A DNA stretch of 64,000 nt from Diadema antillarum. Taxonomy: Eukaryota. Below, in pieces: positions 1 through 44,355 of the stretch. A program made the translations under genes and the position numbers. A model generated the notes under the pieces. That model made no database searches. It was not told the DNA's origin and was given only the letters and a program-made list of their open reading frames with translations. The first letter of the stretch is position 1; each line of letters opens with the position of its first letter. The stretch spans positions 620,001 through 684,000 of the forward strand of contig NW_027272299.1 in assembly GCF_040938485.1 (NCBI RefSeq), in the 5' to 3' direction.

Positions 1-9
1 GTGCAGGAT

Positions 10-14
<5 letters not shown>

Positions 15-47
<33 letters not shown>

Positions 48-3398: not shown

Positions 3399-3839
3399 TT
3401 GTACTTATACATTCTGAATCGTACTTTATGAGTCACCGTGTGCCAAACATAATTATTTCTTACAAAACAGTGCTAAAAATATGACTTGTGAAACGTTTGC
3501 TTTGTATCATGTTGTGAACTTCTTTTGGACGGAAATAAACTATCATGGAAAAAAAAAAGTGTTACAAGTAAATGAGTGAATGAGGTGGAGAGAGAGAGAG
3601 AGAGGGGGGGGGGGCGGGGAGAGAAGCAGGCAGAGAGAGAAGAAGAGATATCATATAGAACATTTCAACATAAGGATATCAAAAAACCGTGAAAGGGGAG
3701 TAGAATGTCACAAAAAGTTTAGGACATTGTTCTCAGCCTGTCCTCAGGTGAAATGCTTCTGTTCAAAGTATAGTGTGATAATAGTTTGCTACATAATGAT
3801 AACGTAGATAAGTATCATATCTATCGTAGATAGGTATCG

Positions 3840-4634: not shown

Positions 4635-4981
4635 CTACTGCTTGTATTTAGCCAACATTTTGTTGAGGCACTTTGTGACTTCGCAGCAGAAGTAGTACCA
4701 CTCCATCCCATGGGCTGCTTTGTCCACCTTGTCGGGATGGTAGCAGGCGATTGCTTGGAGAAGGCATTTTTTCGCTGATCCCGATGACTTTGCGTTGCAA
4801 TTCATGGCAACGGTGCTGGATTTAGGGGGCCAAGCATCGAAGAGCTTCTGAACGAACATTTCAGTGGACAGGGAAGATGCCGTCAGTGAATTGAGTTTCT
4901 TCAGCTTGGGTTTCAGTGACTCCAAAGCCCTAGTCTTCTCCTCAGTCTCTTGCTTTTCCCGCTCCAAACGTCTTTGAAGTT
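4635..4981 (-). CDS. Exon 10: coiled segment and C-terminal J-domain-like region
   Basis: ttgcag|AA...; SAKKCLLQAIACYHPDKVDKAAHGMEWYYFCCEVTKCLNKMLAKYKQ*; HPDK motif lies between two predicted helices. Confidence 0.85.
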
Positions 4982-7900
4982 CTGCAAGAGGATAGACATG
5001 GACGTCGGGAACTTAAAACAGGTTTAAGAGCAAACAATTCATAACACATTATCATTCTTTAATCTACGCCTAGGGGAAAAACTTGAATGTAATGCAGTTG
5101 AATAGTGTTGATAAGCACAAGGCAGGCCGTATCTACAACTGTGATATAAATAATGTTAAGGAAATACACTGAGCACGAGTAAACCAACATCAGCTGAGTA
5201 TGATATACTAAACATTTTGTTGCCTTATTCATATATACTTACTATGCAGTTATGTGTGTGTGTGTGTGTGTGAAGTACATGGATACTATTTTCAACAACA
5301 ATACAATGCGCGACAAGTACAAGGCACAAACCATAGAAAGAAATGGGTATATAAAAACTAACAATACACGTCATTTCGGGGAAGATCAGAACAACAGCTA
5401 GGAAGATGTCCTTTAATATTCTCCCTGGAGATTATCTCATCGTGTCACAATATGTGAGGGAAAAGGGGTTATGAGAAGAAGTCATTTCAAGTGCGTGCAT
5501 GAAGGCCTACATGGGTCCCATTTCAATGTCGAGGTATGAGTCCGATACGTACCTGCTGCAGTAGCCAAGCGCTTCTTGACACTTTCCTTACAGGCATCCA
5601 CATTTTGCCGAAGGGTACGCACGTTTGTCATTACATTTCCTTCTCCGCCACACGTTCTCTCGGCATCATCCAACAAAAGGGAGCATCTCTTCATGTACCT
5701 GAAACACATTGTGACAGGGGTCAAGACTTTGAATAGATATTAGAAAAATGCATTTATCTTATTTTTTTTCTGACAAAGTTTCTCATCTTTTGATATGTGT
5801 GAGAAACAGACTGGCTTATGCATGTGCTTTATTCAATCGCAGCTCTAAAAACTCTTCTTAAGGAAGTGACGATATCATTAGTCTCCAAATCTCCCACTTA
5901 CCTGCAACGAAATCATTCTAAAGTACAATTAAAAAAATATATATGTTCATCTAATAATTATGTCCAAAAGAGGAAACATATATTATTTCTTGAATTGCAC
6001 TTAAGCAATGACTCCTTCAAAAGGAAATTACTGGCTGTTTCATAGACCAAAAGTATTTCTTTCTTAAAAGGATCGTTATCTTCACAGAGCAGGACAACAA
6101 TGCAAGAATTGTCATTGATGTCGCTTTGGCGAGAAATCATTCTACCTTGCAAAATAATTATTCCATAACTTCATTATGACCATTTTCATTTGATATAAAC
6201 TTGAACATGGCTGGAGTTTCCCCGGAATGATGAATTTGCAATGTAGCAGATGTCCAGGAGGGGTAAATTGACCCCCTCTGAGTTAACGCAAATCTTGCGA
6301 AATGTAAGTGAGTGGTCCACGAGTCCGACACTGCGTACATTTTCAGAATTACATAAACATACAGTGATACATGTACTTCCAACCAGACAATCTCTTTTTC
6401 CCCTTTTCATTGGAAGTAAATTATACAATAATGGATACAGGCGTGATACGGGGGATTTGAAAATCACAGATTATCATTTACCATACTGAATTAAATTTAA
6501 TTCAAATGCATAATGTTGTGCAAATGAAGCGTGGCATGATGTACCTTAGACACTCTTCGTACTCGTTAGTTTGGGATATTTCCAGGCCAGTGTTGTAAGC
6601 ATATTGGGCGAGCATCACTTTACCAACCGCTTTAGAGTGACAAACCGGCAGGCACTCTAGAAACTCTTCAAGTTTGGTAGCCTTGACTGTACATGAGAGA
6701 ACGTAATACAATGAGTGAATGGATTTCAGTTGTACATTATTAACATGAATGACAAGAGTAAACCCCTTACTTCTTGTGTTTAATCTGGCGTGTGAAAAGT
6801 TTTCTTAGCATTGTAGTATAAGGGACATAGACACATTGTTATCTTCTCCAAATATTAGGATGACAAGTGCATTTACACTGCTTATATTTTAACCAATTTA
6901 GTCTCAGAAACCATATTTCTTTGATTTTTCAATGATTTCACTAGGATTTGTGAGGTAGAAAAAATCAAAACATCAATCGTATTACAGCCCTTGGTTCTTC
7001 ATTGGTTCATAGTAGCAGATTTTTAAAATCTCAGCATAATTAAGGTTATACTGAATAGGTTTCTCTCTCAAAATGATTTTGAAAATTCCTTTCGGCTTTG
7101 TGTAGATTTGACAAACGTAATATAAAACATATGCAGTAGATTAATTAGTTCCAAGTATACATGACACAGGTTGATGACATTTTGAAGTAAAGTGTCCCAG
7201 CACTTGATACCTTAGATACAAAGTAATGTCTCTCCACTGAAAAAAGAATCAAACGTAATAAAATTTTTATCAATATCTGACATACTCGCAGAAAGAGACG
7301 ATGGATCAACTAGTTTGTATAGCGTATTTCATGTAGCGGATTAGCCGCTACGATTGAACATTCACAAGAAGATGACGAATTCGTTTTCATATGACGAGGA
7401 TATTTTATCAAGCAAAATTCATGAAGCAACAATATCCTCATCTTTGAAAGCTTATCAGGATAAGTTAATACAACTTTGCAGCGCTAAAGTCATTTAATGT
7501 GAAGTTTATGCTATATTCTTTTTTATTTCTTCTATTTCATTTTACTAGAGGGTATAAAGTAAACAGTGCTTGTATATCAAAATGTGAGATGTCATAACTG
7601 TCTTATTTTTGTTCATGTTTTAATGAAAGTTCCATGCCCTTCTAAATTAATTTCAATACTCTGTATACTGTTTATGTTAGTTTCAGCACAGATAAGCTTT
7701 CCAATTGAACATCATAAATTTAGTAGCATGATCAGCGCATTAAAAGATTACATCGGTCTCATATCTGGGAACTGGCTGCCTTTACAGAAAGTCGTTCAGA
7801 CTAAAAGTGTCGAGAGTAATACTTTTCCCAACGAACATACGCACATAAATGGCCTCTAATTATACAAAAATATGATAGATAGATTGCCTATTTTCTGTTC

Positions 7901-8893
7901 TTCTTTTATGTCACGGACTAAAATAATGCGCCCAAAGTGTCAAACTCAAAATTTTAAGCGTACAGTAAAGTGCGCAAAGAAATGAACACATTCTGTGATT
8001 AATGTCTGTCTACATTTAAAATAGGTCCTATTACCTCATCAGAATGATATTAAAAAAGAAAAAAAAAATCCTCTCACCCTCGACCGTCATGTGAGATACC
8101 CAGGACCGAAATTCTTGAAGACAGTTCTCGATGCATTTGCCAAGGTGGCTTCTCCATGCCAAAGGTTTGCATTTCCCCTTCGAGAATGCTCGAGCAAAAT
8201 ACTTTGCAGCATCCACGAAGTCATTTTCAATACCCTGCAGAAAGTGTTGTGAACAGTTGAACAAGGAATAATTATCTGTAAGTAGATATTTGCTTTTCCA
8301 TTTTTGTAAAAATATACATGTACAACATTGAAGGCAAAAGACAAACTACCAAATAAGATTGGCAGACTGATTGGGCAGGAGAGTTTGATATTGTTTTTCC
8401 CAAATATTGAAATTTTACAGCTTTTGAGCTTTAATTTTGCCAAATTCAAGGGATGTTTTGAGATTCTTTTCGAAAATTGTCCAGATTTCATGATGCCAGT
8501 ATGGTTTTCGGAGGTTTACCTTTGTTTTTAAAACTCTACATATCTGCTCGCCCATATATTTCTAAACTTGAAGGCTGATTTTCTGGCAACGGTTTTGTGG
8601 CAGATTTATTACAAAACATACAAAGGGAATTATAAAAATACCAAAACAAAGATATTACTCTCTAAAAAAAAATCGAGTGAAAATTTTCACTCTAAAAAGA
8701 GTGAATACAATAAAGAGTGAATTTCGAGTGAAATTGGAGTGAATTTTGAGTGAAAATGCTCATTTTCACTCATTTTGGAGAGACGTCAGGGATCACTCGA
8801 AGATTTTGGAGTGATCCCTGACGTCACTCCAAAGGTTCATTTTCACTCAAAATTCACTCCAATTTCACTCGATTTTTTTAGAGAGTATAAACA

Positions 8894-8945
<52 letters not shown>

Positions 8946-10022
8946 GTGTGTGTGTGTGAAAAGAAGAGCCAGATGGACGTAGCTAGGGTCAACGTGCCTG
9001 TTTATTGCCGGTCCCAAACGGACCTTCATCAGGGCTGTAACGATACAAAAATGACTCACTCGTATGGCTACACTAATAAATATATATTCATATATATATA
9101 CTAATATAAATCTAACTGGCGTGAGTCTATAATGACTGTGTAATCAATCAATCCGTAATTACAGCTGTATATAACATATTCCAATAATAATATACATAAT
9201 CAATTGCATATTATTGAATACATTTCATATCAAACTCGTGTTATTAATTGAGATGAAGGTATATAACAACAACACCATGCCAATTCAGTATCCTCATCTT
9301 ATGTGTTGTGTGACAGACGACTGTAATAATATCAAACTAGACATTTTTATGTTGTCGACGATAATACAGCATGTGGCAGCATTGCAAGACGTAAGTGGCT
9401 ATATAATACAGTACAACAGCCACGCGTCATCTTCTGGCTATCGTATAATGAGGTAAATAACACTAATATACCACAACCATTCATATACATACAGTTGTAT
9501 TATATAGCCCCTTACGTCTTGCAATGCTGCCACATGCTGAATTATCGTCGACAACATAAAAATGTCTAGTTTGATATTATTACAGTCGTCTGTCACACAA
9601 CACATAAGATGAGGATACTGAATTGGTGTTTTTGTTATATACCTTCATCTCAATTAATAACACGAGTTTGATATGAAATGTATTCAATAATATGCAATTG
9701 ATTATGTATATCATTATTGGAATATGTTATATACAGCTGTAATTACGGATTGATTGATTACACAGTCATTATAGACTCACGCCAGTTAGATTTATATTAG
9801 TATATATATATATATGAATATATATTTATTAGTGGAGCCATACGAGTGAGTCATTTTTGTATCGTTACAGCCCTGATGAAGGTCCGTTTGGGACCGTAAG
9901 CTCGGCGGCAATAAACAGGCACGTTGACCCTAGCTACGTCCACCTGGCTCTTCTTTTCACACTGAATGTAAATAATGAAGGAGCTACACTGGTACTGTAA
10001 ATGGTTGAGACCCCTTCTCGCA

Positions 10023-10069
<47 letters not shown>

Positions 10070-13000
10070 CATACATAGGGCTATGCCAAGGTACCTACGC
10101 AGCCGTACTTCTGTTCTTCCAAGATGATAACGAAGGGAGCGCATAACATTAGTAGAGTGTTTTGAAAGACAGCTCTGTGTTAGCCTACCTTATCCCCGCT
10201 TGGATAGTTGCCGTGTTCTCGGTATAGGGTGGCCAGTTTCAGGAAAGTCATGGCGACATTCTTGGCTGCCGAAACACCTTCCTCGTCCGTGCAAGCCAAC
10301 TGGCAGGCCTCCTTGTAAAGTTCCAGGGCTTCTTTGAGGCAACGAACCCTTTGTAGCGACCCAGCCTCATGGTCATCAGCTGACTTGAAAAGCCCATTCC
10401 CCAAAGTCCTCTTCTCCACTGATGCCGAGGCGGGAGGGGCAGTTACTCTGGCAGATGTTCTCGTGATTTCGTCTATCAAAAAGCCGTAACGTTAAAAAGA
10501 TACATGATCTTGTTTCTTCTCAATTTTCGTGTTTTTCATTTTCTTCTTAAAGATATCATTTACAACTTGCAGATGACAAACAAAACCCCAGCTTTAGTGC
10601 TTCAAAATAGTTCCGAAATGTGAGTTAGGGATAGAAACAACCAATGTACAATTCTAAATCTGTGTAATCAATGTTAAGTTTTGTTAAATATACAAAATGG
10701 GAACAATAGTTATGATAAAAATGTTTCTAGACTAAACAATCTACAAGTATGGTTTATGGAGAAAAATATTGATATCTCGTTATATTTTAGGCTTTATTGC
10801 GAAATTTGATATGGTAGGGTATTTTGTGATACATCTGACCTACACACATGCAGAAAATGTGATATCTTGAACATTTTTGAATCACTGCTCCCAATGGTAA
10901 ACAGTACCTTTAACACTTTAAGTATTTGTGGAAAATTGAGCAGAGAAAATGGGATTCCATCAGGATCCCATTTTCTTTGCTCAATTTCCACGAATAAGAA
11001 TTAATGATATTCATTTCTGGTCAGTTTCCATTTGTTTGCCTTTAACACTTTAAGTAGGAGAAATTATTCAAGGGTTAACGTATATCCATCCTGATCAAAG
11101 TAATCATCGTCCCATGCACGACGGCTGAATATTATGACACACGTGCCGTTCATAACGATCCGTTGAGTTTGTCACAAAGTAACAGAATGGTGAATTTTGG
11201 ATTCCCCAACGACCCCTCCGATCAATTAATACGGTCTTGTGTTGGGTTTGGGTTACATTTTACTGTTAAGGTAAGAGTCGTATCTAAGAAATAACCTGCT
11301 GACTTGGTCATTCGCCTCTTGACTATTTTAATACAGGCATTCACGGCCTTCCGAAGGCGAGGTAAGGATGTTTCCTCAGCTAATCCATCGTACAAGCTCT
11401 CGGCATTGTCCAGCACACCTAAGCATTTCGTCATGTACCTGAAATGCATTGTGAAAATAATCACAGATTTAAGTAGGAACTACATGAAAACTAATATTCA
11501 GTGGGACTCTTTTTTATTCACATATATCATCAATTAAACTTGGTAGACGCCTCATAAAACACGGATCCTAAAGGATCTACACGGTGATCTGGGGAGATCC
11601 GGGGAGATCCTTGGAGATCCTGGGAGACACGGGGAGATCCGGGATAGTTTCGACCTCGACGGAGTGTCGACGAGCGTTGATATGACTGTACACACGGGAT
11701 GTCTACGTGACTGGGGCATAAGGCTTGGCAATTGCTTCACCTTCCAATGANNNNNNNNNNNNNNNNNNNNNNNNNNNNNNNNNNNNNNNNNNNNNNNNNN
11801 NNNNNNNNNNNNNNNNNNNNNNNNNNNNNNNNNNNNNNNNNNNNNNNNNNNNNNNNNNNNNNNNNNNNNNNNNNNNNNNNNNNNNNNNNNNNNNNNNNNN
11901 NNNNNNNNNNTATGTTATGGAGACATGTGTTCCAATTTAGTCTGTAGCCCAATTCGTTTATAAGAGTCAGCACTTTGAGGAAGTAAACTTTTATAGGAGC
12001 ATGGAAAGAAAGAGCATATCAACATAATTTTGACCAAATAATGAAAATGCTAGAAGTTAAGATTGTTACGACTGTTTTTTGTATAAATTTTTCTGCTAAT
12101 GGATTCCCAAAGCCACTAAAGGACAATCGAGAAAGTAGTAATGTCGCGACGAAAACTATAGTCATTATTTCGTTTAAGTTTGATATTTCCTACATTTCCC
12201 TTGAAGAACTATTTTTCAGTGCTAATGTATAGTAAAGAATGAACTTTTTTTAATTCAGTTATGACACGGATTATGTTTTAAGACCCCATGCAACCCTCCC
12301 CTTCCCACAAAAGTGTTGATGATAGCAATACACATTTTGACAGACTATCAACAATGCTGACCAGAAACAGTTTCATGCAATGACACCTACCAGTAAACTA
12401 GTAACCACTGAGTATCACAAAATGTTCGAACTCTGGAAATAACCATGAAAGGTAAACGTAGGAATACATACTGCAGGCATCCCTCGCGGTCGGTTTTGGC
12501 TTTTTCAAAGCCAATTTCGTAGAGACCCAAAGCCAAGAAAAGTTTAGCTCTTGCTTTGGCTCTACTGTTCGGCAGGCGTTCTTGAAAAGCATCCAGTCTA
12601 AACGCCTTGTCTGGAAGTAAAATAACATGCAGGGAAAGAGTTCGATCTATGAGTTTTATGATTATCTCCCTTAAAACCTCATGCTCTGTCAGAATTCCCT
12701 TGAGCTAAATATTCTCAAAATTGTGGTTAAGTGAACCTTCTTTATTCCGTGTATTATTATCCGCGATACTGCCGGCAATTTCATGCCCCAGTCACACAGT
12801 GCTTTACGATGGATTACGTCCGCCGCGGATAGATACGAATGAGTGGACGCAGGGGGACGCAGCGTGGACGCAGGCATCCGCAGGGACGTATGTAGACGTA
12901 ACTGTCCGTAACTCATCCGTAAAGAAACGCAAAATGACGTCGCCAAACCTGCGAAATTTTGAAATGTTCAAAATTTCGCAGATTGACGCCACGGACGCAA

Positions 13001-13659
13001 ACTTACGCAAGTAACCGTAACCAAACGTAACTATCCGTAACTGAACGTAACTATCCGTGGCTTGGACGCAGACCATCCGCAAAAAGATTTATCTCCCGTC
13101 GGTTTGCGTTCGCTTACGTCCACCGTAAGTATCCGAAATTTACCGCAAGTTAACGTATCACAACAGTTTCGTCCGCTTACGGATATTTACGGATAGCTAC
13201 GGATGCTGCGGGCAATTACGTCCTTCGACGTTTTCCGTTTTCCACTCGCATGGGAACACAGAGACTCGTGGGAAGGCACACTACTCCTCTTGCCAAGCTG
13301 CAGCGCCTTTACCTGAAGGAATGCTACAACACAGTCGGAGCGGTGGAGAGGCAGAACTGCGTGGTCAAATTATGAAATTTCTCCCACAATTAATGGTCAT
13401 TTTAAGTGGCACCCATATACCATGTATAATCATGACATCGGTTGACTCTTGGTGCTGAACTTTTTTTCTTGTACTCTTCGAAAGTATATTTTTCGAAAAA
13501 AGCAATATTTTGGATAGGGGATGGGGTGACAGCACCTTATTCACTTTTCTGGCCGGGGAAGGTGTGGGACAGGGGCAACTATATAAAATGAGAACGAATT
13601 TAGTATTTCTCTGTAGTCTTATCCACTTTACGCTCCATCGAATGTGTATTACATTTTTT

Positions 13660-13706
<47 letters not shown>

Positions 13707-19700: not shown

Positions 19701-22700
19701 ACCTTCGCCTGACCATCGAATACGAATGAACTCGAGAGCCTATCGATTGCAAATACCTTGTTTAGAATACCTTGCTTGATTTTGGCAGTTTTGGCACATA
19801 AATGTGTCAAAGCAATATGGACGCAAAACAATAAAAGCATTACAGTATGACAGGGATGAACATTTCTTGACCACGCGCTATGAGATTGCACATAGGCATA
19901 CTACTGTTTTGCTTGGAAATTGAGGCGTTATGCTGTCTTGCACCTGGAGCAACAAAATGATCACTTAAACTTCATCTGCCACACTGCATACATTATGAGT
20001 CGGGTAAGTTTTCGTTAACTTTGCTTTACTTTGTTTTCTTAGAATTCAGGAATGGAATGAAGATATAAAGCAGGAACTTACTAATCATTTTATGCCTTGT
20101 TTTCATGTTGTGTTGTTATGATTAATTGTGGGATTCCCGAATCCCGATGGTCAGCTGGGCCGATAGACCGCACCTATCGCCGCTGTCTAACTCTATCAGC
20201 CCCGGGCCCCGGTCTATCAGCCCCACGGTCTATCGGGTGTAGTTTTGTTGACCATATCATATGATAAGCTTTATTTGCAAACAATGATNNNNNNNNNNNN
20301 NNNNNNNNNNNNNNNNNNNNNNNNNNNNNNNNNNNNNNNNNNNNNNNNNNNNNNNNNNNNNNNNNNNNNNNNNNNNNNNNNNNNNNNNNNNNNNNNNNNN
20401 NNNNNNNNNNNNNNNNNNNCCAAAAAAACCAAATATGTGTGTGTGTGTGTGTATGTGTGTGAAGTTCAAGTTTATACAACTAAGTAAGTTGAAATAAGAT
20501 AAAATAAATCGTTATGTAGAAGTGTGAAAACTTGATGAACTTTCGTCCATTGCCAATATGACTTGACCATTGTGTTGGATTATGACGCATCTATATGTAG
20601 AGCTGTTTATTTAAAAATGATTGAAATCCGTTATCAATGTTTACATGATTTAACACTCCATAGAATATAGATCATAGGTCTAGAATCTATTCATATTAAA
20701 TAATCATGTTCAACTAGTTCCTATAAAATGTGGCCAACAAAGAGAGGAACAGTGTATAGTTTTTAAGTCTATGCTGGTTTAAAATGTGATAGTATTTTAT
20801 TTGTTGGATGGAACATATTTTCTTCTTTAAACATCACTAAAATTATATACTTTGGTTTAAAACTTTTTATTTTATTAGCGATTTAGTTTTAATAGTCATT
20901 TTCGGGATTAGCTCGTATTTTCAAAGTTCAGAGGGACGGAGAATGGCTTGTTCGGCCGTCCATGAATAGAGTAAGTATTAGCATACCTGAGTATTGTGGT
21001 ATGTGAAAAATGGAGAGGTCAATAAAAGTTTCCAACCAAATTTTCTGATTTTGGTGTCATTTCTACAAACTGAAACACTAATGCACCATCACAATTTATC
21101 TTAGCAAAGTCCTGAAAACTTACTCTTCCGTTTTTTCTGGGTCACCCTGTCCCTGTATATGATAATCTTTACATGTTATTAACTTCAATCAACAGAAGCA
21201 GAGACGTCAAACATGAAGAGATCTCGATCAGGGTCAGAAATCCGGAGGGCCCAAAGACAAAGAGCCTGAGAAAAGAGTGCAGCTGGATGCCACTCTCTGT
21301 TAACAATGTTTAAGGTGCAGTCTGCGGCACCAAAAGACCCAAAGGCAACAACTTCAAAGCAAGACGTTGACAAACAAAGCGGAGCAAGCGCAGAGACAGT
21401 CGACCTGGATCTCGAGGCTGAGTTACCAATGGATATCGGCAGTTCTGATTCGGAGTCAAACGAAGTCGAACTTGGCCAAGTCGCACAGTCTGGTAACGTA
21501 GAGAGACTGCCCCAGCCCCAGCCTCAGCTCCAGCCCCAGCCCCAGCCCCAGCTCCAGCTCCAGCCCCAGCCCCAGTCCCAGCCCCAACCCCAGCCCCAGC
21601 CTCAGACTCAGCCTCAGACTCAGCCGCTTCAAAAAGAGAATCTCCGGTCTCGACCGAATCAGCCACTATGTCAACTCAAGAAGGATCAACATGGTCGCAG
21701 ATTTCGAGGAGAATTGTACGAAACTTTTCCGTGGCTTGAATGGGACGGAGAAGCTAAGAACGGAAACGGTGCTGCATTTTGCCACACTTGCCGACAAGCT
21801 AAACTGCGAAATGTTCCCAGCTCTGGTAAATGTGAAGAAAGCTTCAGCAAAACCGGTTTCACAAATTGGAAAAATGCTTCCCCGAAATTCTTGAAACACG
21901 AGAAGAGTGAAAGTCATCGACTGCTGAGCTACAAGATGAGCAAACTCTGGCAGGGTGAGAATGTTGCTCAAAGACTAGACACAAGAGCGCAAGAAGAAAG
22001 TAAACAAAACACACAGTATCTACTGACAATAATAACCTCACTAAAGTATCTGGCGAAGCAAGGACTAGCTATCAGAGGACATACGGATCAGAACAGTAAT
22101 TTCATGACATTACTTCAACTTCGCAGTGAAGAAATCAAAGGCTTGGACAGATGGCTTACCAGGAAGACTTCTTGGACATCGCATCAAATTCAGGAAGAAA
22201 TTATCAACTTGATGTCTTCAACAGTGATGCGTCAGCTAGCTGCAGAAATGGGTGGAAAGCCATTTGCCATACTGGCAGATGAAACGGCTGATGTCTCAAG
22301 GATAGAGCAGCTCTGCATCTGTGTTCGAACAGCAACGGAAAACTTGGTACTTGAGGAATACGTCTTAGGACTATACTCTCTAGACAAATGCGATGCCGAA
22401 TCGATCTTCAAGACAATGAAAGATGCTCTGATCAGGTACAATCTTCCCCTCAGCCTTTGTCGCGCAGCATGTTTTGACGGAGCCGCTTCATTTCAAGGCA
22501 AACATAGCGGTGTTGCAGTTAGGTTACAGGAAGAAGAACCAAGAGTCGTGACAACACACTGCTACATGCATTCAATCAATCTTGCTGTACAAGACATGGT
22601 GAAACATGTTCCCAAGCTGAGAAACTTCCTCACAACAGTGACAGATCTAATAAATTTCTTGCGAGATTCGCCAAAGAGAGTTGCCATCGTCAAGACTGTA

Positions 22701-25700
22701 GCAGAAGCACTCGGCTGTCCACAGGCTCATATCAGGCCTCTCTGTCCCACTCGTTTCACTGTGAAACAGAAGGCTCTGAACAACATCAAGGAGCAACTGC
22801 AAGTAGTGAAGGAAGCCTTGGTCACAATAGAAGACACCGTCACAGACAGAGATTCACAATCAAGAGCAAGTGGATTCTTGCGGGTTGCGAGCAGCTTTGA
22901 CTTCACCATTTGTCTATTCATGAGTGTCACCGTGTTCGAAGTAAGCGACAGGCTCAGCGAAGCACAGTCACCCCATGTATCAGCAGGAGAGGGGGTTAAG
23001 CTTACACAAGTAGCTCTTGGACAGCTTCAGAACATTCGTAAGGATGAATGCTTCGATGAAGTTTGGCAGCATTCACTTGACTATGCACAAAAACACGACC
23101 AAGAAGAACCTACACAACCAAGACAATCTAGAGCACCACGGCGCCTTCAGGACAGTGATCCACATGCTTTCGAGACCCCCAAAGACATGTTCAAATCAGT
23201 TTGGTTTGATGCACTGGACAACGTGATTTCGGGGATGCAAGATCGAGTCTCCTCAAAGGCAATATCTGTCTTGAGTGCAGTAGAAGATCTTCTACTATCC
23301 GCATGGTCAGATAGAGAGGTCCCAACCAAGTCGCTCGAATGTGTAGTCAAGCACTTTGGAGACGGTCTGAATGAATCTCGACTTGAAGCTCAGCTTCGTG
23401 TTCTTGAGAATCTTAGGGACATCACCGGCAGCTCTACTGTAGCTGGCCATAGGGTAACAGTGAAGCACATCATTGACTCCATCTCAGAGACAGATATGAA
23501 GAGCATCATCCCAGAGGTTGTTAAACTCTGCAGGCTCTACATCGTGCATCCAGCCACAACAGCCACGGCAGAACGCTCTTTCAGTACGCTCAGACGCCTC
23601 AAGTCTTATCTGAGAGGAACAATGTCGCAGTCTAGACTGAACTCACTCCTGATTCTAACTATGTACAGAGAGAGAGTAGAATTGATTGACATGGTAGATC
23701 TGGTCAATGAGTTCATTTCACGCGGCGACACGAAACGAAGAAACGCGTTTGCTCCCTTGAGGAAAGTCTAAATGCTCTGATAATGTCAGTGTTCAAGTGT
23801 GGAATGACAAACTCTAAAAGAAAAACACGAATACTGTGTATCAGTTCAGGAAAATTATGTTTTAGAAGGTAATTGTAACGATGAATGCATAATTAAACAA
23901 ATACATGTACAACAAAAGCCTAACATTTATGAAAGAAATACCGGGAATTTAAAAGGTAACCTTGACTACTAGTTAAGGTAGAAAATTTTACAAGAGTGTT
24001 GGTCCTTGCTGATTTTATGCTGACAGCATTACTACATTTCCACGGAAGCCTAGTATGGAATCAGTTCATCTAAAACGAGCTGAATATTTTAAGATCACCA
24101 AATTAAAACGTGCTTGATATTTTGCGGCCCCCAAACAAAACAAAAAATGTAAACTAAGCAAAACAATCATCGCTGTGTCATAAACATGCCTTTCTGACAG
24201 TTTCTGTTAACACGAATTACACGATGATTCGTTTTGATTTTTTGTTTTATAAAGAATATTCTAAATTTTCCCACATATCTAATCAGACTTGGTCAAATTA
24301 TCAATAATTTGTTCACAGTATTTGAGGCTTGTTCAAGGACCTTTGTTTTATTCTGCAAGTACTCCATCTTGTCTTAGGAGATCAAGTGATTTGACAAATA
24401 ATATAAACATTGGAATTTGGAAGATTTGCGGTGGACATGAACAGATATCGTTAAATCTTTTTTCCCCTACAGCATTAACTTTCAATGATATCTTACACAG
24501 AAAGCGTAAGAAGTCAATGCCATCAATGATGTTGCTCAGTTATGCATAATTAGTGGTATTCACAATATTTTCAGGAAACTGGACATGCCAACATTTCGTA
24601 AGATATGCACACAATTCCTGAAACTAATAACAGCTCAGTTAGAATGATTTAATTTTTTTTGTGGTATCTGCTTTGCTATGCATTACTTCAAGTATTCAAG
24701 GTATTGTTATTGCAAACGCCATTCATTTGTTCAGATAACGAGACAGCTAGGCTCCTTAAGGCGCATTTACACCGAATCCGGCCCGGCATTTACGCGATTT
24801 CTAGTCTATGATTGGTCAGAGCGCTGCTCAATGTTCAACGCGTTGACCAATGACCGCCCAGATATCGCCTAAAATATGTCGCTCCGTGATGCCGTGCCGG
24901 ATGCGGTGTAAACGCGCCTTTAACCAGAATAAGGCGAGTTAACAGTCATGTTGGTGTCCGATTTTCAGTTTAAAAAAAACTTTGTTAAAGGGCATATCTT
25001 TGGTTTCTCATTGTTGAACTATTGCTAAAATACCAGATGTTTTAATTGTACCTTAACCTATGAAAAAGAAGCTACAAAATTAATTAAACAGAAGCTACAA
25101 AATCAATATAAGTCAGACACTCGTGATGAAACTACGAGTCTATTTGTCAGATGTTGCAGACAGGGATCCCGTGGGTGTCCACTGAATTCAATTGAATTTA
25201 TTGTAATGAAAAATCGACATGAACTTCGGCTACAAGTCATGTAGAGAATTATCAAGTTTTGTCATGTTCAATGTTACTCGAACTTGCAAGAAAAAGCAGC
25301 AAGATTGGTGTGAGTTACACTACAGTAAAACATAATATTTAGTATATTTGATAAATGTTATAGACAAATATTTCAGTGTTTCTTTCGTAGGTACAGAATT
25401 ATAGTATTTTACTGACTTACTGTCATACGAAACGAAAGCTAACTCTAAGTTTTGTGTGGTGACTTGTGAAATAACACCATCAAGGGGACTTGAACACTGA
25501 CGTCTATATATAATGCAGTAGTGCATTTTATATTTATCTTTTAAACTCTTCTTTTTTTTTTGATATATTTTGTCAAGACTTATTTCGTTGTTGAAACTTA
25601 TCCTTCTTGTCAACATTCTTCTTCTCTATAAACAGCTTAAAACAGGAATACGTAATACACAACAAAAATGTTATTTTGTTCTGGTGACAGGTGTCCGTCA

Positions 25701-28700
25701 CAAAGACTGGTCGTCTTCATGTTTCGTTTCATCTTTGTTCATGATTTATTGTTTGTGCTTCAATAAAATAAACAGAAGTTTTAACAAAAAACGTGCTTCA
25801 GGTGAATCTTGAATTTGAACTACTGCGGTACTGCTCGAAGTGTGATCACACTAGTGTTATTTCCTCCATTTGATATAAACAAACATAGTGTGTTTAATTT
25901 NNNNNNNNNNNNNNNNNNNNNNNNNNNNNNNNNNNNNNNNNNNNNNNNNNNNNNNNNNNNNNNNNNNNNNNNNNNNNNNNNNNNNNNNNNNNNNNNNNNN
26001 NNNNNNNNNNNNNNNNNNNNNNNNNNNNNNNNNNNGTATGGTCTATCGTGAGCCCCCTCCAATATTTGCCCCCCCCCCCCCCCCCCCCAATCCAAAACTG
26101 CTTCCGGCGCGCCTGTGTACTAACACGCATCATTGTTAGAATTACATGAATATCACATCACAGTTGCTTTTCTCAGCGAATTTCAAAACCAACATCAATA
26201 TGCCTGATTATGCAAATGGCCTTTTTTCTGCTCATATGCGAAGTGAAACTGTGAGGTGGCTTATCAGTTAAGTTGTTTGCATGATCAATAATATATTTAT
26301 CAAGGGATGTCCGATTTTTAACTTGACGTTAAAATGAAAATTTGTGCGTTTTATAGCATAAAGGAGGTTGTCGAAGGTCTGATAAAAGAAAACATCTTTA
26401 CTCAAATTTTACCAAAATTTCAGTGATCAGTGGAATCAAATTTGTTTATGAATGATTTAAATGGAATACATTGCTTACTAATGCACAAAATAATCGAAAG
26501 TTTATACCGTATCTTCGATCAAAGATTAGGCGATTCACTAAATCGTTTTTGTTTCAACTCATTCCTGTACCTTTAAGTGTAATCTGAGTGTGTTTCAGAT
26601 CCAAATATTCACTAACGCAGCTCTGCAAGCATTCTTCTAGATGGTTGCCCCAAGCCAGGCTTTTGCAGTTTTTCTTGGAATATGCCTTTGCAAAGTATTC
26701 AGCAGCTTCCATGAAATGATCTTCAATAACCTGGAGAGTATCAAGATACAAATAGGCAAAGAAGTATGTAAAGCCGACGCCATTAAACGCCATTTGTACA
26801 CAAATTTGAGCAGGTGACATGGAATGTTTAATCTTGCAGTGATGTAATATGTTTGGGACAGAAATTTGCACGTTTAAGAAAATGGTCCTTATTCGAGTAA
26901 AATATAGACAGCATGGCTGATTCCTGATCCAGTCCAATAAAAATGATGGAAAACATTTAGGCTATGAAATGTTATTTAAGTGGCATGAAGACAAATTCAT
27001 TAAATTGAAGGAGAGTCATGTGCAACCAGCCCACCTTATCCTCTCTTGGATAACTGTGAAATTCTCGACATAAGGTGGCCAGTTTCACGGAGGTCACGGC
27101 GACGTTTTTGGCAGCCGAAACATTGTCCTCATCGGTGCGAGCCAACTGGTAAGCCTCCTTGTACAGCTTCAGGGCTTCCTTGAGGCAGCGCATCCTTTCT
27201 TGCGAATAAGCCTCATGGTTGTCAACTGCACTCAAAGTTCTCTCCTCCGCCAACATGACCGATGCCAAGACGGAAGGGTCGGTTGGTCTGGCAGATGCTT
27301 CCGCACTTTTATCTGAGTGCAAAAATAATGATGAAAGCAATACGTTTACCATAATTATAGTTATCACACAAAATGGCATTCACCAAGGGTAGTCTCTCCA
27401 GTATTAACACTGCTCTCCTAGACAATTTCCCAGAGGAACATTAAGATTATTATTGCTCAGCGTTGCCAGGTATAGGGCTACCTATTTGCACACTGTTTGT
27501 TAAGAGGGACATTGTGGGCAAAATATCCCGTCCAGGGATGGACGCATTGGGCAACATTCGAACCCCACGTCCTTCTGTCTTCAAATCCAGAGCCTTATCC
27601 ACTCTAGGAAGACGGCAGTTTAACCCTATTAAGCCCAAGCTATTTTGACCCCTCGCAGGCCCAAGGGGGGGGGGGGCACATTGTGCCCCCCTATATAACT
27701 TTTTTATTATTTGATGTATCATCGTCATATTTGGCATGTGGGTAGAGTAACTCATACTCTACATGATCGTACATTTGAATTTTCACAAGGTCACCCATGG
27801 AGGGCGCTATTTACCAAAATATAAAGAAATACATAGGAAATATGCTAAAAACATGATTTTTCTGTATAATTTCTTCATCTCCATTATATATGTCTTATTA
27901 TAGACCAATTACTTTCATATTTGCTACAAATGATAAGTAAGTGGAATTTTATTATTTGTTATGGTTGAAATTTCTCAAGGTCACCACATGGGGGCGCTAT
28001 TCATATCAACATAGTGATACATTATGAGACCTGAGATGAAATGTTTGGGATGGGTACATGTATAGTTATGACATTTCATATTTGCATAATCCTGGAATTT
28101 TGAGATCGCAAATTGACAATACGATAAACTAATGATATTAGAGGCATAACTTGGGTGAAGGAATCAAAATAACTCAAAATATAAGGGCAATCTTTAGAAA
28201 ATATTATTGTTTTCAATTATCTCTATTATATCTATTGTTTTATGCCTTTGTCACATAAAAACAAAGGAAATAATAAGAAAAACTTTCCAGGACCATAATT
28301 ACTTCGAATTTTGCTCCTTCAACAAATTTCAGCCAAGAAACACCCATCTCATACACTGTAATGCTGTTAAATGAAATGGGAACAGAAAAAAGATGCAAAA
28401 TATGACTGACATGGTTGTCAGTTTATGGTTGCCATGGCAACCAACAACATCAAACATAGCTAAATTATATATCAAAATGTTCGCAATAAGATTTTAGGAA
28501 AAGTCACCAAATTTGGTTGAAATCGGATTAAGGGCGAAGGAGTGGCAAACGAAAATCTGGTAGGGGGGGGGGCACAATGTGCCCCCCTTGGGCTTTATAG
28601 GGTTAAGTTCTTATTCTATCTTTCGTCGTTATTATGGAAAACATTACAGATGGCCAGAAGCCGAGGCTTTTTTTGTCATATAGCTATGTTTATCCATTTT

Positions 28701-30947
28701 TTTTTGGGGGGGGGGGGGGGCATTGAAACCTGGCCTTTGACTCTTAACCTTTGACCTTTGACCTTCTGGCTGGAAATTTCCTGGAGAATCTCCATTAGGT
28801 AATGCATGTATTAAGTTTTGAAACTAATTATGCAAGTATTGATATACTAGTATATGAGGGAAATAGTAAAATTTTGAGGAGTTGACCCTGACCTTTGACC
28901 CCTTGCCAGGTATAGGGCTACCTATTAGCACACTGTTTGTTAAGAGGGACATTGTGACATTTGACCCCTGACTATTGACCCATGACCCCTAAATTCCCTA
29001 GATAATCCCTGCCAGTCAGTACATGCGTATGTACCAAGTTCCACGAAGATACATTGAACAATTTGTGAGAAAAGTGATATTGCAACATTTTCACCTAACC
29101 TTTGACCTTATGACATGAAATTCTCTCTGGAGAACCTTTACGCAGTAGTACATGTCCACACCAAGTTTCAAGAAAATACCTTTGGGCATTGCACAGATAT
29201 GGGGGAAATTGCAACATTTGTAGCATTTGACCTTGACCTTTTGACCTTTGACCTCTTGCCAATATCACTAAAATCTACTCAGCTGTAGTTGTCCCATCAT
29301 ACATCATCCTTGGACCAAGTTTGGTGAAAGCTGCTTCATCCAGTTTTGAGTTATCACGTAAACAGATGATAGGATTTGACCTTGATCTTTGACCTTTGAC
29401 CTCAGTCCAATTTCACTGAAAAACTAATGAAGTAATTAAGTATATGAATATAAGAACGACCCAAGTCCATGGAAGATCATTTCGAGTAAACTAAAAAAAA
29501 CTTCATATCTTTTTTATTTGTCCAATAATATTCTATTTAACTGTGATGGGAAGGCAACATTGTATATATACAAATTAGAACATATATTATTATGACAATT
29601 AACACTTACATTAATTGTGGAGAGGCCATTTTGTGTGATGGACTTGGGTCGTTCTTTGATTCATATGGACTTGGGTCGTTCTTTGATTCATATACATGAT
29701 ATTCTGCTATAGAGATGGGGGAAGGATGAGAGAGGGCGCTATTATATGAATGTAAGAATGACCCAAGTCCTTCATTCTTACATTAATATAAGATTTAACT
29801 CATTCATTTCAGGCACTTCCGGGGGTAATTAGGATTTATCATTTACACACAAGATGAGTCCATGCATAAGCTACAATTTCCCATGTCAAACTGAATTTGG
29901 CCAAAAATTGGACTTGGGTCATTCTTATATTCATATACTCAATTGCCCCGTCATACATCATCCTCCAATAAAGTTTGGTGAAATTTGCTCCATCCAGTCT
30001 TGAGTTATCGCGTAAACGGATACAATTTATTTCATGATTTGACCTTGACCTTTGACCTTCAGCCGATATCACCCAAAATCTAATCAAATAATTGCCCCAT
30101 CATACTTCATACTTGGACCAAGTTTGGTAAAATTCCTGTAAATATTACTCAAGTTATCGCGTAAACGAAAGCGGACGGACGTGCGGACGGACGGACAACC
30201 CGAAAACATAATGCCTCCGGCACCACTTCGTGGCGGAGGTATAAAAATGATCACACAAACACACACTCAAACACGCACTCGCATAGAGGTAACTTTATTT
30301 CTTTAGTCATATTTACTTGATAGCATTGTCCACCCCATCATTGTTCTTTTGATCACGCACCTCATGCCTGCGTACTGAAGCTTGAGTTAATAATTACGAA
30401 AACAAATTTACAAATAATTACCTATTCACTCACCTTTCGGGTGATGCCTATGACTGCTGCCCTTTATTCCCGTTGATGAACGAAAGTTGCTTTCAGTTTC
30501 ATATTCTTCCTCGTCGTCGTCGCCATCGTCGTCGTCAGAGTTCTCTACCGAGTTTAACTCCGAGGTCTCTTCACAATTTGAACTCCGATCGGAAAACTCT
30601 GAGGCCGTCGCCCACTCCTCATCATCCGTCTCACTCTGGGACATCAATCTCACACGTCGGGCGACATACCGCCAAACATACCCGTTTTGTACAATACCCA
30701 AATCAAAGATGACCCCGTCTTCTTTTTCTATGGTTTGATGATGGTTGCGTGGATGGTCGTCGACGATTGCTGAGTGGTGGAAAAAGACATCTTTGTAGAC
30801 AATCAGATCGAGAGAATGACGGTCGATAAAGCCGTACCCACGTGTGGCTAAGAAGCTCTTTACAACACCTGTTACGTCTCTTTTTATAAGAGTAAAATCG
30901 TCTTCTCTCTCATCCTTACGTGCCTGTCCGCTTGATTCCTGACCCAT
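4635..30947 (-). CDS. 10-exon gene, 769 aa: cold-shock domain + acidic linker + 2x TPR-like helical module + C-terminal J-domain (HPDK)
   Basis: Hand-assembled join (minus): 30947-30434, 27312-27035, 26730-26571, 12610-12472, 11438-11296, 10472-10189, 8234-8078, 6686-6545, 5698-5553, 4981-4635. All introns are GT-AG with phases 1,0,1,2,1,0,1,2,1. Total 2310 nt = 769 aa + TAG, with no internal stop. Confidence 0.85.
5553..5698 (-). CDS. Exon 9: helical module 2d
   Basis: tttcag|G...GCAG|gtacgt; YMKRCSLLLDDAER...VDACKESVKKR. Confidence 0.85.
6545..6686 (-). CDS. Exon 8: helical module 2c
   Basis: gtacag|TC...AG|gtacat; VKATKLEEFLECLPVCHSKAVGKVMLAQYAYNTG. Confidence 0.85.
8078..8234 (-). CDS. 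Exon 7: helical module 2b
   Basis: ctgcag|GGT...GAGG|gtgaga; GIENDFVDAAKYFARAFSKGKCKPLAW. Confidence 0.85.
8658..8885. mobile_element. Tc1/mariner-type MITE
   Basis: TA|ctctctaaaaa..atcgagtgaaa ... tttcactcgatttttttagagag|TA; internal gagtgaaa repeats. Confidence 0.8.
8954..9962. repeat. ~1 kb palindrome (arms about 455 bp), Penelope-like inverted terminal repeat, flanked by (TA)n
   Basis: 8954-~9410 is the near-exact reverse complement of ~9497-9962; (TA)n at 8898-8941 and 10026-10063; contains a hammerhead-like motif. Confidence 0.85.
9870..9906 (+). ncRNA. Minimal type I hammerhead ribozyme-like motif (one core substitution)
   Basis: gcc-CTGATGA-a-ggtcc(gtttg)ggacc-GTAA-gc-TC-ggc: stem I gcc/ggc, stem II 5 bp, palindromic AGCT stem III; GAAA reads GTAA. 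Confidence 0.6.
10189..10472 (-). CDS. Exon 6: TPR-like module 2a
   Basis: tgatag|AC...AAG|gtaggc; EKRTLGNGLFKS...EALELYKEACQLA...SAAKNVAMTFLKLA. Confidence 0.85.
10589..10914. repeat. Kolobok-like repeat fragment (second copy ~55285-55622)
   Basis: About 330 bp of similarity between the two sites, each ending ggtaaacag.acctttaa. Confidence 0.65.
11296..11438 (-). CDS. Exon 5: helical module 1d
   Basis: tttcag|G...GCAG|gttatt; YMTKCLGVLDNAES...VNACIKIVKRR; paralogous to exon 9. Confidence 0.85.
12472..12610 (-). CDS. Exon 4: helical module 1c (in a different frame from the overlapping ORF-track entry)
   Basis: ttccag|AC...CA|gtatgt; DKAFRLDAFQERLPNSRAKARAKLFLALGLYEIGFEKAKTDREGCLQ; aligns with exon 8. 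Confidence 0.85.
13661..13720. repeat. (AAT)n microsatellite
   Basis: Directly visible. Confidence 0.95.
14166..14250. mobile_element. 85-bp TTAA-flanked MITE nested in another repeat
   Basis: TTAA on both sides. The host repeat (from ~14075) recurs without the insert at ~63878-64000, and a related copy lies at ~56210-56305. Confidence 0.75.
14384..14948. mobile_element. Kolobok-like MITE
   Basis: TTAA|aggacaagttcaccttcataaacataaggattgaga ... tctcaatccttatgtttatgaaggtgaacttgtc. Confidence 0.75.
16211..17775 (-). mobile_element. 5'-truncated non-LTR retrotransposon (CR1/L2/Crack-type): RT C-terminus, 3' UTR and (GAATT)n tail
   Basis: ORF 16882-17763 with LFADDSNLF, LNLQKTKYMLF, KFLGITVDNKLSWKFHI. 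3' stem-loop gagggtcccac..gggaccctc near 16400-16446; (aattc)n at 16211-16242. Confidence 0.9.
19109..19674. mobile_element. PIF/Harbinger-like MITE nested in the hAT
   Basis: agggctttttacacttg...caagtgtaaaaagccct with 3-bp flanks tat/tat; internal ttagcccc/ggggctaa repeats. Confidence 0.8.
21306..23771 (+). CDS. hAT transposase, ZMYM1-like (TTF-type zinc finger, DUF4371-like region, hAT C-terminal dimerisation domain)
   Basis: 821-aa ORF: FPWLEW..AFCHTC..GFTNWK...KHEKSESH, GLAIRGH, ILADETAD (D), CFDGAAS (D), HCYMHSINL (CxxH), LCPTRF, PATTATAERSFSTLRRLKSYLRGTMSQSRLNSLLIL (E). Confidence 0.93.
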   Translation: MFKVQSAAPKDPKATTSKQDVDKQSGASAETVDLDLEAELPMDIGSSDSESNEVELGQVAQSGNVERLPQPQPQLQPQPQPQLQLQPQPQSQPQPQPQPQTQPQTQPLQKENLRSRPNQPLCQLKKDQHGRRFRGELYETFPWLEWDGEAKNGNGAAFCHTCRQAKLRNVPSSGKCEESFSKTGFTNWKNASPKFLKHEKSESHRLLSYKMSKLWQGENVAQRLDTRAQEESKQNTQYLLTIITSLKYLAKQGLAIRGHTDQNSNFMTLLQLRSEEIKGLDRWLTRKTSWTSHQIQEEIINLMSSTVMRQLAAEMGGKPFAILADETADVSRIEQLCICVRTATENLVLEEYVLGLYSLDKCDAESIFKTMKDALIRYNLPLSLCRAACFDGAASFQGKHSGVAVRLQEEEPRVVTTHCYMHSINLAVQDMVKHVPKLRNFLTTVTDLINFLRDSPKRVAIVKTVAEALGCPQAHIRPLCPTRFTVKQKALNNIKEQLQVVKEALVTIEDTVTDRDSQSRASGFLRVASSFDFTICLFMSVTVFEVSDRLSEAQSPHVSAGEGVKLTQVALGQLQNIRKDECFDEVWQHSLDYAQKHDQEEPTQPRQSRAPRRLQDSDPHAFETPKDMFKSVWFDALDNVISGMQDRVSSKAISVLSAVEDLLLSAWSDREVPTKSLECVVKHFGDGLNESRLEAQLRVLENLRDITGSSTVAGHRVTVKHIIDSISETDMKSIIPEVVKLCRLYIVHPATTATAERSFSTLRRLKSYLRGTMSQSRLNSLLILTMYRERVELIDMVDLVNEFISRGDTKRRNAFAPLRKV
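24759..24919. mobile_element. PIF/Harbinger-like MITE nested in the hAT
   Basis: tta|aggcgcatttacacc...ggtgtaaacgcgcct|tta. Confidence 0.8.
26571..26730 (-). CDS. Exon 3: helical module 1b
   Basis: ctccag|GTT...AAAG|gtacag; VIEDHFMEAAEYFAKAYSKKNCKSLAW; paralogous to exon 7. Confidence 0.85.
27035..27312 (-). CDS. Exon 2: TPR-like module 1a
   Basis: ctcag|AT...AAG|gtggg; encodes RCLKEALKLYKEAYQLARTDEDNVSAAKNVAVT; paralogous to exon 6. Confidence 0.85.
27624..28602. mobile_element. piggyBac-like non-autonomous element
   Basis: TTAA|ccctattaagccc...gggctttataggg|TTAA. Confidence 0.85.
28730..30244 (+). mobile_element. Second Helentron/DINE-like copy (5' part lost, interrupted at ~29440-29925)
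   Basis: Same tttgacctttgacc modules, (GGAC)n and aacataatgcctccggcaccacttcgtggcggagg 3' end. Confidence 0.65.
30434..30947 (-). CDS. Exon 1: cold-shock domain plus Asp/Glu/Ser-rich linker
   Basis: VTGVVKSFLATRGYGFID...DVFFHHSAIVDDHPRN shows RNP1/RNP2-like CSD motifs. ATG at 30947; donor AAAG|GTGAGT. A possible acceptor 8 nt upstream of the ATG means a further 5' exon may exist. Confidence 0.85.

Positions 30948-39723: not shown

Positions 39724-44355
<4,632 letters not shown>

Follow-up and report, generated by a model that had tools for sequence, protein, structure and literature searches.

In a 64,000-nucleotide stretch of the genome of Diadema antillarum (positions 620001-684000 of the record JBFRCO010001411.1, assembly GCA_040938485.1; hereafter the window), ten exons on the minus strand encode a protein of 769 amino acids that is predicted to join a cold-shock domain (CSD) to two helical modules and a C-terminal J domain. 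In our reading, which we consider probable, the gene is one member of a sea-urchin family whose proteins carry one to eight CSDs, a linker, an eight-helix module resembling tetratricopeptide repeats (TPRs), a helix of about 50 residues and a J domain of the auxilin type with an invariant HPD tripeptide. The module would have been duplicated in tandem in Diadema, with both copies retained, and the domain content suggests a co-chaperone directed to ribonucleoproteins (RNPs). In one sense the gene is ordinary, being already annotated and one of several paralogues. It would fall among the modular J-domain co-chaperones, some of which are RNA-associated, and the family itself is unstudied.

Gene model

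The gene was rebuilt from the raw sequence, from position 30947 down to 4635. Its ten exons (Table 1) give 2307 coding nucleotides and a stop-free frame of 769 amino acids, and every internal exon boundary has the form AG...GT, so that all introns are GT-AG. The translation is letter-for-letter the same as the NCBI entry P0015, "uncharacterized protein [Diadema antillarum]", whose gene covers the same 26,313 nucleotides of the public record. The ten-exon model proposed in an earlier sequence-only reading of this DNA was thus recovered in full, including the frame that it had assigned to the exon at 12472-12610 (X1). The same reading had called the gene hidden, which it is not, since P0015 is already part of the NCBI annotation. 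The intron between A1 and B1 is about 300 nucleotides long in the window and in Diadema setosum, while the one between B1 and X1 measures 14 kb in the window versus 1.7 kb in D. setosum.

Tandem duplication of a four-exon module

Exons 2-5 (A1, B1, X1 and C1) and exons 6-9 (A2, B2, X2 and C2) represent the same module twice over, with about 240 amino acids per copy and, between the copies, a protein identity of about 49% and a synonymous divergence (dS) of 0.83. Phase 1 holds at both ends of the module, at the donor of E1 and at the acceptor of J. Any chain consisting of E1, a number of modules and J is therefore automatically in frame, and phase compatibility cannot serve as independent evidence of coding function. 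The sequence-only reading had taken ten phase-compatible exons as an argument for maintained function; with a single four-exon, phase-1 module present twice, this argument becomes much weaker. Maintained function is argued here instead from the intact orthologue, from purifying selection, from the C1-A2 junction common to the Diadema models and from the timing given by the module tree.

The C1-A2 junction is present in all six Diadema paralogue models (6/6). In a maximum-likelihood tree of the modules, the Diadema module-1 and module-2 clades are sisters (support 96/98), with module 1 on a longer branch than module 2. This topology, with the two clades as sisters that stand apart from the camarodont modules, dates the duplication to the Diadema lineage and to a time before the multiplication of the paralogues. 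Misassembly, haplotype duplication and two chained tandem genes were considered as sources of the two modules and were rejected. C1 and A2 are separated by only about 740 nucleotides, an interval that could not accommodate a J exon together with a promoter and another CSD exon, and both the orthologue and the tree speak against these sources as well. The locus is a clean case of a phase-symmetric exon block that was duplicated in frame within its gene and thereafter retained under selection.

The Diadema setosum orthologue and purifying selection

A syntenic copy of the gene was found in D. setosum on the gapless, chromosome-level sequence OZ188199.1 (locus L003), next to the same NAC/HYPK neighbour, and this neighbour, common to both species, identifies it as the orthologue. 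All ten exons are there and their splice sites are kept; the length of every indel is a multiple of three, and the open reading frame (ORF) has 769 amino acids. B1, X1 and C1 follow each other in the same order as in the window with nothing extra between them. That the ten exons form one gene, as the sequence-only reading had held, is supported by this orthologue and by the two-module structure of all Diadema paralogues. The last 499 residues of the orthologous ORF equal the NCBI entry P0016. Since the P0016 start is preceded by CSD and A1 exons that are intact and have good splice sites (L003:5864-6362 and L003:9387-9679), the 499-residue P0016 is probably truncated at its 5' end, and the real product would be 769 amino acids long.

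The comparison of nonsynonymous with synonymous rates (dN/dS) against an orthologue, a check put forward in the sequence-only reading, gave 0.45 overall between D. antillarum and D. setosum (Fisher p 1e-6). Module by module, the ratio was 0.43 for module 1 (p 7e-4) and 0.44 for module 2 (p 5e-3), and for the CSD exon it was also significantly below 1 (p 0.017). The gene is under purifying selection.

A sea-urchin family with the same domain order

The extent of the family was examined by an exhaustive profile search with exon A among 1.84 billion representatives. Only 14 proteins were retrieved, and the named ones are all from sea urchins. One to eight CSDs followed by one module and a J domain are predicted in Strongylocentrotus purpuratus (P0024, P0029 and P0031), Lytechinus pictus (P0022) and Lytechinus variegatus (P0020), while the S. 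purpuratus model P0032 has CSDs and the module but stops before the J domain. Among these relatives, S. purpuratus LOC105444399 (P0029), LOC583115 and LOC115918514, L. pictus LOC129255554 and L. variegatus LOC121430300 all keep one order: CSD or CSDs, linker, a module with the SAAKN motif, the long helix and a domain reading WPPK...YHPDKVDK. The gene in the window has this family order too, from the CSD through the SAAKN module of exons A, B, X and C to the WPPK/YHPDKVDK domain, and its module is 32-36% identical to theirs. It differs from them in having the module twice, a single CSD and a linker that is short and acidic, whereas the relatives have a single module, one to eight CSDs and often a long disordered linker rich in S, T, N and G. 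Intron positions were compared in one S. purpuratus paralogue, P0029, in which the CSD and the linker share one exon and the E1/A, A/B, B/X, X/C and C/J boundaries all fall at aligned positions.

The sequence-only reading had described the protein as chimeric and its combination of domains as unfamiliar. Neither description holds, since several predicted paralogues from S. purpuratus, L. variegatus and L. pictus have the CSD-module-J order: judged from the predicted proteins, the architecture is that of a conserved, sea-urchin-specific family that is present in databases and unnamed. Whether it was already a described family, which that reading had named as a reason to drop its proposal, receives a divided answer. 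RefSeq and UniProt list the proteins under the labels "uncharacterized" or "CSD domain-containing protein", and no paper on the family came up when the literature was searched by architecture and by LOC identifier.

CSD-less genes with the module and the J domain also occur, in S. purpuratus (P0026) and on the eukaryotic contigs L004 and L007. The nearest language-model neighbour is a large mollusc cluster of "J domain-containing protein" entries (0.93), and the oyster protein K1RLG1 was recovered as a structural match (E 1.6e-11). The mollusc and other J clusters to which K1RLG1 belongs, like L004 and L007, share the cassette of the module and the auxilin-type J domain with YHPDK. They differ in that no CSD was found in the stretches examined and in an extra TPR-like insert between module and J, which P0026 has as well. 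It is likely that a cassette of TPR-like module and J domain gained its CSD exon or exons in echinoids.

Two side observations concern these relatives. An old S. purpuratus model, P0012 (379 aa), combines the family module with a histone-fold tail (CENP-T_C, TAF and Histone matches at residues 318-372) and was apparently fused with an adjacent histone gene during gene prediction. On the metagenome contig L007, the CSD-less relative (1-957, minus strand) lies about 7 kb from an HSP70 gene (8001-9909, plus strand); an integrase (rve) ORF and a fragment of a kinesin are found on the contig as well, and the proximity to HSP70 may be chance.

Domains of the predicted protein

The CSD exon matches Pfam PF00313 with 36.9 bits against a cut-off of 27 (E 3.3e-9) and so passes the gathering score, which upholds the CSD call of the sequence-only reading; on P0015 the match covers residues 26-88 with 33.9 bits. 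The closest solved relatives are YB-1 and YB-2 (E 1e-5), and the motifs GYGFI (RNP1-like) and VFFHH (RNP2-like) align with GYGFI and VFVHQ of YB-1. The linker that follows is acidic (pI 4.05). The domain is Y-box-like, and it may bind nucleic acid. In its last strand (30684-30720, minus strand), D. antillarum has an insertion of 12 nucleotides relative to D. setosum, which keeps the GPKGY motif of the camarodont CSDs.

The modules had been described from the sequence as two TPR-like units, and this was confirmed as far as the fold is concerned. No Pfam TPR model scored above threshold on them, the best being TPR_12 with 20.6 bits against 30.1; searches exon by exon gave TPR matches with E values of 0.004-0.07. 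The two units are duplicate copies of one module. An AlphaFold2 (AF2) model of module 2 and J, built on a family alignment of 19 rows, reached a predicted local distance difference test score (pLDDT) of 90 and has eight helices in four hairpins, followed by a helix of about 50 residues. Foldseek matched the module with probability 1.0 to TSK, NASP, LGN and CTPR (E about 3e-4), and VIA matched it to TPR proteins with Z 12-14 and no stand-out, so that the resemblance is generic; neither Foldseek nor VIA singled out a specific TPR relative. On these models, the modules are TPR-like alpha-solenoids at the level of the fold only. A BRO1-domain match for the module was also seen among the AFDB clusters.

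For the C-terminus, the J domain with HPDK that had been proposed from the sequence found support in structure and in residue conservation; the Pfam DnaJ model missed it. The AF2 model of the J region, made from an alignment of 11 rows, has a pLDDT of 85.6 and comprises helix I (39-49), a loop (50-67), helix II (68-80), the HPD (81-83) in the loop between helices II and III, and helix III (87-113), with an extra N-terminal helix (2-34) ahead of helix I. J domains of auxilin or JAC1 occupy the first five places among the VIA matches of this model (Z 8.6, 8.3, 8.2, 8.1 and 7.3), and the next match has a Z of 4.2. The best match among models of reviewed UniProt entries is Arabidopsis auxilin-like protein 1 (TM 0.66). 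The language-model neighbours of the region are J-domain clusters. HPDKVDK is invariant in 11 family members, and WPPK and the helix III motif are likewise invariant between Diadema and the camarodont urchins, although the overall identity of the region between these groups is only 41-46%. In relatives, sub-threshold Pfam DnaJ matches fall on helix II and the HPD (full-length P0029, E 0.03; L004, 3.8e-4; L007, 2e-3). The modelled C-terminus has a J-domain fold of the auxilin type that bears an HPD.

Alternative explanations

Several observations weigh against one gene that encodes an RNP-directed co-chaperone, and they are given here with the explanations that they favour. Five of the six Diadema gene models (P0001 and P0016-P0019) begin at a methionine inside B1. 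At the paralogous D. antillarum locus L002 (JBFRCO010000135.1; regions L002:142-474 and L002:9926-19617), the annotation closes a 410-aa CSD gene in an A-type exon, at a TAA two codons past the donor, and opens another gene, P0017 (500 aa), in B1, 9.5 kb further downstream. The CSD part is likewise absent from the current S. purpuratus model P0023. A search for protein fragments spanning the E1/A1 or A1/B1 junctions, taken as a proxy for transcripts, found none, which is no evidence either way. Separate CSD+A1 and B1-to-J transcripts are possible, as is the in-frame skipping of one module. In its full form this explanation assumes two transcription units, one for a short CSD protein with or without A1 and the other for a separate protein of about 500 residues running from B1 to J, with the 769-residue fusion a join made by prediction that is rarely or never expressed. 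We consider this unlikely, since a protein that starts in B1 would begin inside the first TPR-like module and lack its first two hairpins, while both Diadema species have kept E1 and A1 intact and spliceable, with purifying selection acting on them. On the same grounds, the models starting in B1 are read here as under-called single genes, and the two genes annotated at L002 are likely one gene split by the annotation. The intron after A1, moreover, is short in the window and in D. setosum alike, the CSD is joined to the module in models from four species, with the E1/A boundary aligned in P0029, and the stop that closely follows the E1 donor in D. antillarum is missing from D. setosum, which keeps the GT.

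Other reservations concern the domains. The dN/dS of 0.45 indicates a rather relaxed constraint, and for the J exon alone the ratio is 0.60 (p 0.16), with too few substitutions for significance. The tryptophan in strand 1 of YB-1 (VKWF) is a serine here, so that one of the four aromatic residues with which YB-1 contacts nucleic acid is not conserved. Pfam DnaJ (PF00226) gave no match up to E 10 on the J exon or on the 11 members of the J-region alignment, and searches of the PDB with the J exon and its profile returned only noise; racemase and Vip2 ADP-ribosyltransferase (E 0.014) matches among these were dismissed as chance. The Foldseek E values of the J model are about 1, its helix I-II loop is poor (pLDDT 46-67), and for a small helical domain a Z of about 8 carries conviction only through its distance from the other matches and the correctly placed HPD. 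The C-terminus might then be merely J-like, a helical hairpin with a fortuitous HPD put to some use other than Hsp70, and the protein a CSD-TPR scaffold without chaperone function. We find this very doubtful, given that HPDKVDK and the flanking helix residues have stayed invariant in an otherwise divergent region, that J domains make up all five of the top structural matches, at a clear distance from the rest, and that the sub-threshold DnaJ matches of the relatives fall exactly on helix II and the HPD. It is hardly credible that the two-module arrangement is an artefact of assembly or scaffolding, or that the gene is a decaying duplicate. Four stretches of N do lie in two introns that separate parts of the modules (11751-11910 in the X1-C1 intron; 15033-15267, 20289-20419 and 25901-26035 in the B1-X1 intron), and the 14-kb intron holds transposon ORFs. 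All four are intronic, however, and no exon abuts one. Compared position by position, the public record differs from the window only at the 661 N positions; because it carries letters there and is collinear and of the same length, with flanks that are continuous and in register, the stretches are masked letters rather than assembly gaps. The gapless D. setosum locus and the paralogue at L002 share the exon order, two modules that are only about 49% identical are not haplotypes, no ORF is interrupted, and the dN/dS of each module is under 1.

Possible function and comparison with known systems

The reading as a single gene of the CSD-module-J family makes an RNA- or RNP-directed Hsp70 co-chaperone role plausible, with nucleic-acid binding, Hsp70 stimulation and the existence of a client all suggested by the domains alone. 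In such a scheme, the CSD would bind single-stranded RNA or DNA and the TPR-like modules would hold protein partners, while the J domain would dock ATP-bound Hsc70 through its HPD and trigger ATP hydrolysis. Hsp70 would thereby be loaded onto whatever the CSD and the TPR-like parts hold, which would make the protein a nucleic-acid- or RNP-directed co-chaperone.

J-domain proteins decide where Hsp70 acts. A Y-box-type CSD wired to an auxilin-type J domain would be a new solution to this targeting problem, bringing Hsp70 to nucleic acid or to RNPs. The J domain of the family is invisible to standard domain annotation, and the labels given to the proteins accordingly go no further than "CSD domain-containing" or "uncharacterized". 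The co-chaperone idea could be tested in sea urchins, a classic system for stored maternal mRNPs.

In its extra N-terminal helix and the long loop between helices I and II, the C-terminal J domain resembles those of auxilin/GAK (DNAJC6/26), plant JAC1 and the auxilin-like proteins, and fungal Swa2/Ucp7. Swa2/Ucp7 also has a TPR domain ahead of its J domain and is a weak language-model neighbour (0.82). Sequence identity is only 11-14% to the solved J domains and 24% to the modelled Arabidopsis auxilin-like 1. Unlike the auxilins, the protein has no clathrin-box, DPF, DLL, NPF, FxDxF or W-box motifs in a motif scan and no PTEN, kinase or UBA domain by Pfam. Orthology to auxilin was rejected on the lack of clathrin-binding motifs and of a PTEN-like domain; because the clathrin-binding motifs are missing, the C-terminus is regarded as an auxilin-type J domain and the protein not as an auxilin.

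In DNAJC3 (p58IPK) and DNAJC7 (TPR2), TPR repeats are followed by a C-terminal J domain, and a TPR scaffold loads Hsp70. These proteins have canonical TPRs, a J domain recognised by Pfam and no nucleic-acid-binding domain, whereas in the Diadema protein both parts stay below the Pfam thresholds; neither DNAJC3 nor DNAJC7 is among the top structural matches. A J domain is coupled to an RNA- or RNP-binding module in DNAJC17 (RRM) and in DNAJC21 and DNAJC2 (ribosomes). These combine RRM, zinc fingers or SANT with an N-terminal canonical J domain, in contrast to the Y-box-type CSD and C-terminal auxilin-type J domain found here. YBX1-3, Lin28 and CSDE1/UNR share the eukaryotic Y-box-type CSD with RNP1- and RNP2-like motifs. 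Compared with these, the Diadema protein lacks the basic/acidic C-terminal tail and the zinc knuckles and has the TPR-like modules and the J domain instead, while the multi-CSD camarodont paralogues resemble the CSD array of CSDE1.

By analogy with auxilin, which acts on clathrin coats, one might speculate that sea urchins evolved co-chaperones for the uncoating of RNPs, in which one to eight Y-box-type CSDs would bind mRNA in stored or viral particles and the auxilin-type J domain would fire Hsc70 to dismantle them. We hold this to be quite improbable. Were it true, it would amount to a direct chaperone route to the unmasking of maternal mRNAs, or to an RNA-directed defence, and the two-module form in Diadema would be a lineage-specific elaboration of a partner-binding scaffold.

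Exons and surroundings of the gene in the window

Table 1. Exons and mapped elements of the two-module gene, in window positions.
Feature	Positions	Strand	Description
Exon E1	30434-30947	-	Start codon, predicted Y-box-type cold-shock domain and acidic linker; residues 1-171
E1 donor			AAG/GTGAGT; phase 1
CSD proper	30684-30872	-	Residues 26-88; from the Pfam match on P0015 and the residue-level YB-1 alignment
Exon A1	27035-27312	-	Module 1, first two helical hairpins (predicted); SAAKN motif; 63% identical to A2
Exon B1	26571-26730	-	Module 1; internal Met is the start of five Diadema paralogue gene models
Exon X1	12472-12610	-	Module 1; preceded by the 14-kb intron with transposon ORFs and three N stretches
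Exon C1	11296-11438	-	End of module 1; phase 1 donor
Exon A2	10189-10472	-	Module 2; 93% identical to the D. setosum orthologue
Exon B2	8078-8234	-	Module 2
Exon X2	6545-6686	-	Module 2
Exon C2	5553-5698	-	End of module 2 and beginning of the long connecting helix
Exon J	4635-4981	-	Remainder of the long helix, predicted auxilin-type J domain, stop codon (4635-4637)
HPD tripeptide	4731-4739	-	Residues 736-738, helix II-III loop

The window is AT-rich (38.7% G+C), with a CpG observed/expected ratio of 0.73. A tblastn search of the gene model against the whole window for more paralogous exons gave only a weak CSD-like match at 3416-3559, which was dismissed as an extra exon (E 0.024, without ORF support).

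The 14-kb B1-X1 intron contains, antisense to the gene, an intact ORF of 821 amino acids for a hAT-family transposase (21306-23771, plus strand; Pfam DUF4371 E 1e-14, hAT dimerisation E 3e-6), with a Gln/Pro-rich repeat near its N-terminus; it is an annotated gene in the record. On the strand of the gene, the same intron carries a 293-aa ORF (16882-17763, minus strand) whose product matches the C-terminal portion of a reverse transcriptase (RVT_1 E 5.5e-6, short of the gathering score); it is probably the remnant of a non-LTR (long terminal repeat) retrotransposon. About 8.8 kb upstream of the CSD exon and head-to-head with it lies a 217-aa NAC / UBA_HYPK gene of the nascent-polypeptide-associated-complex alpha type (about 39724-40947 and beyond, plus strand). 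Finally, intronic simple repeats were seen at about 8900-9050, 9990-10060 and 13600-13730, consisting of (TA/TATA)n-type runs, seen as YIYIYI among the listed ORF translations, and of a long (AAT/ATT)n run.

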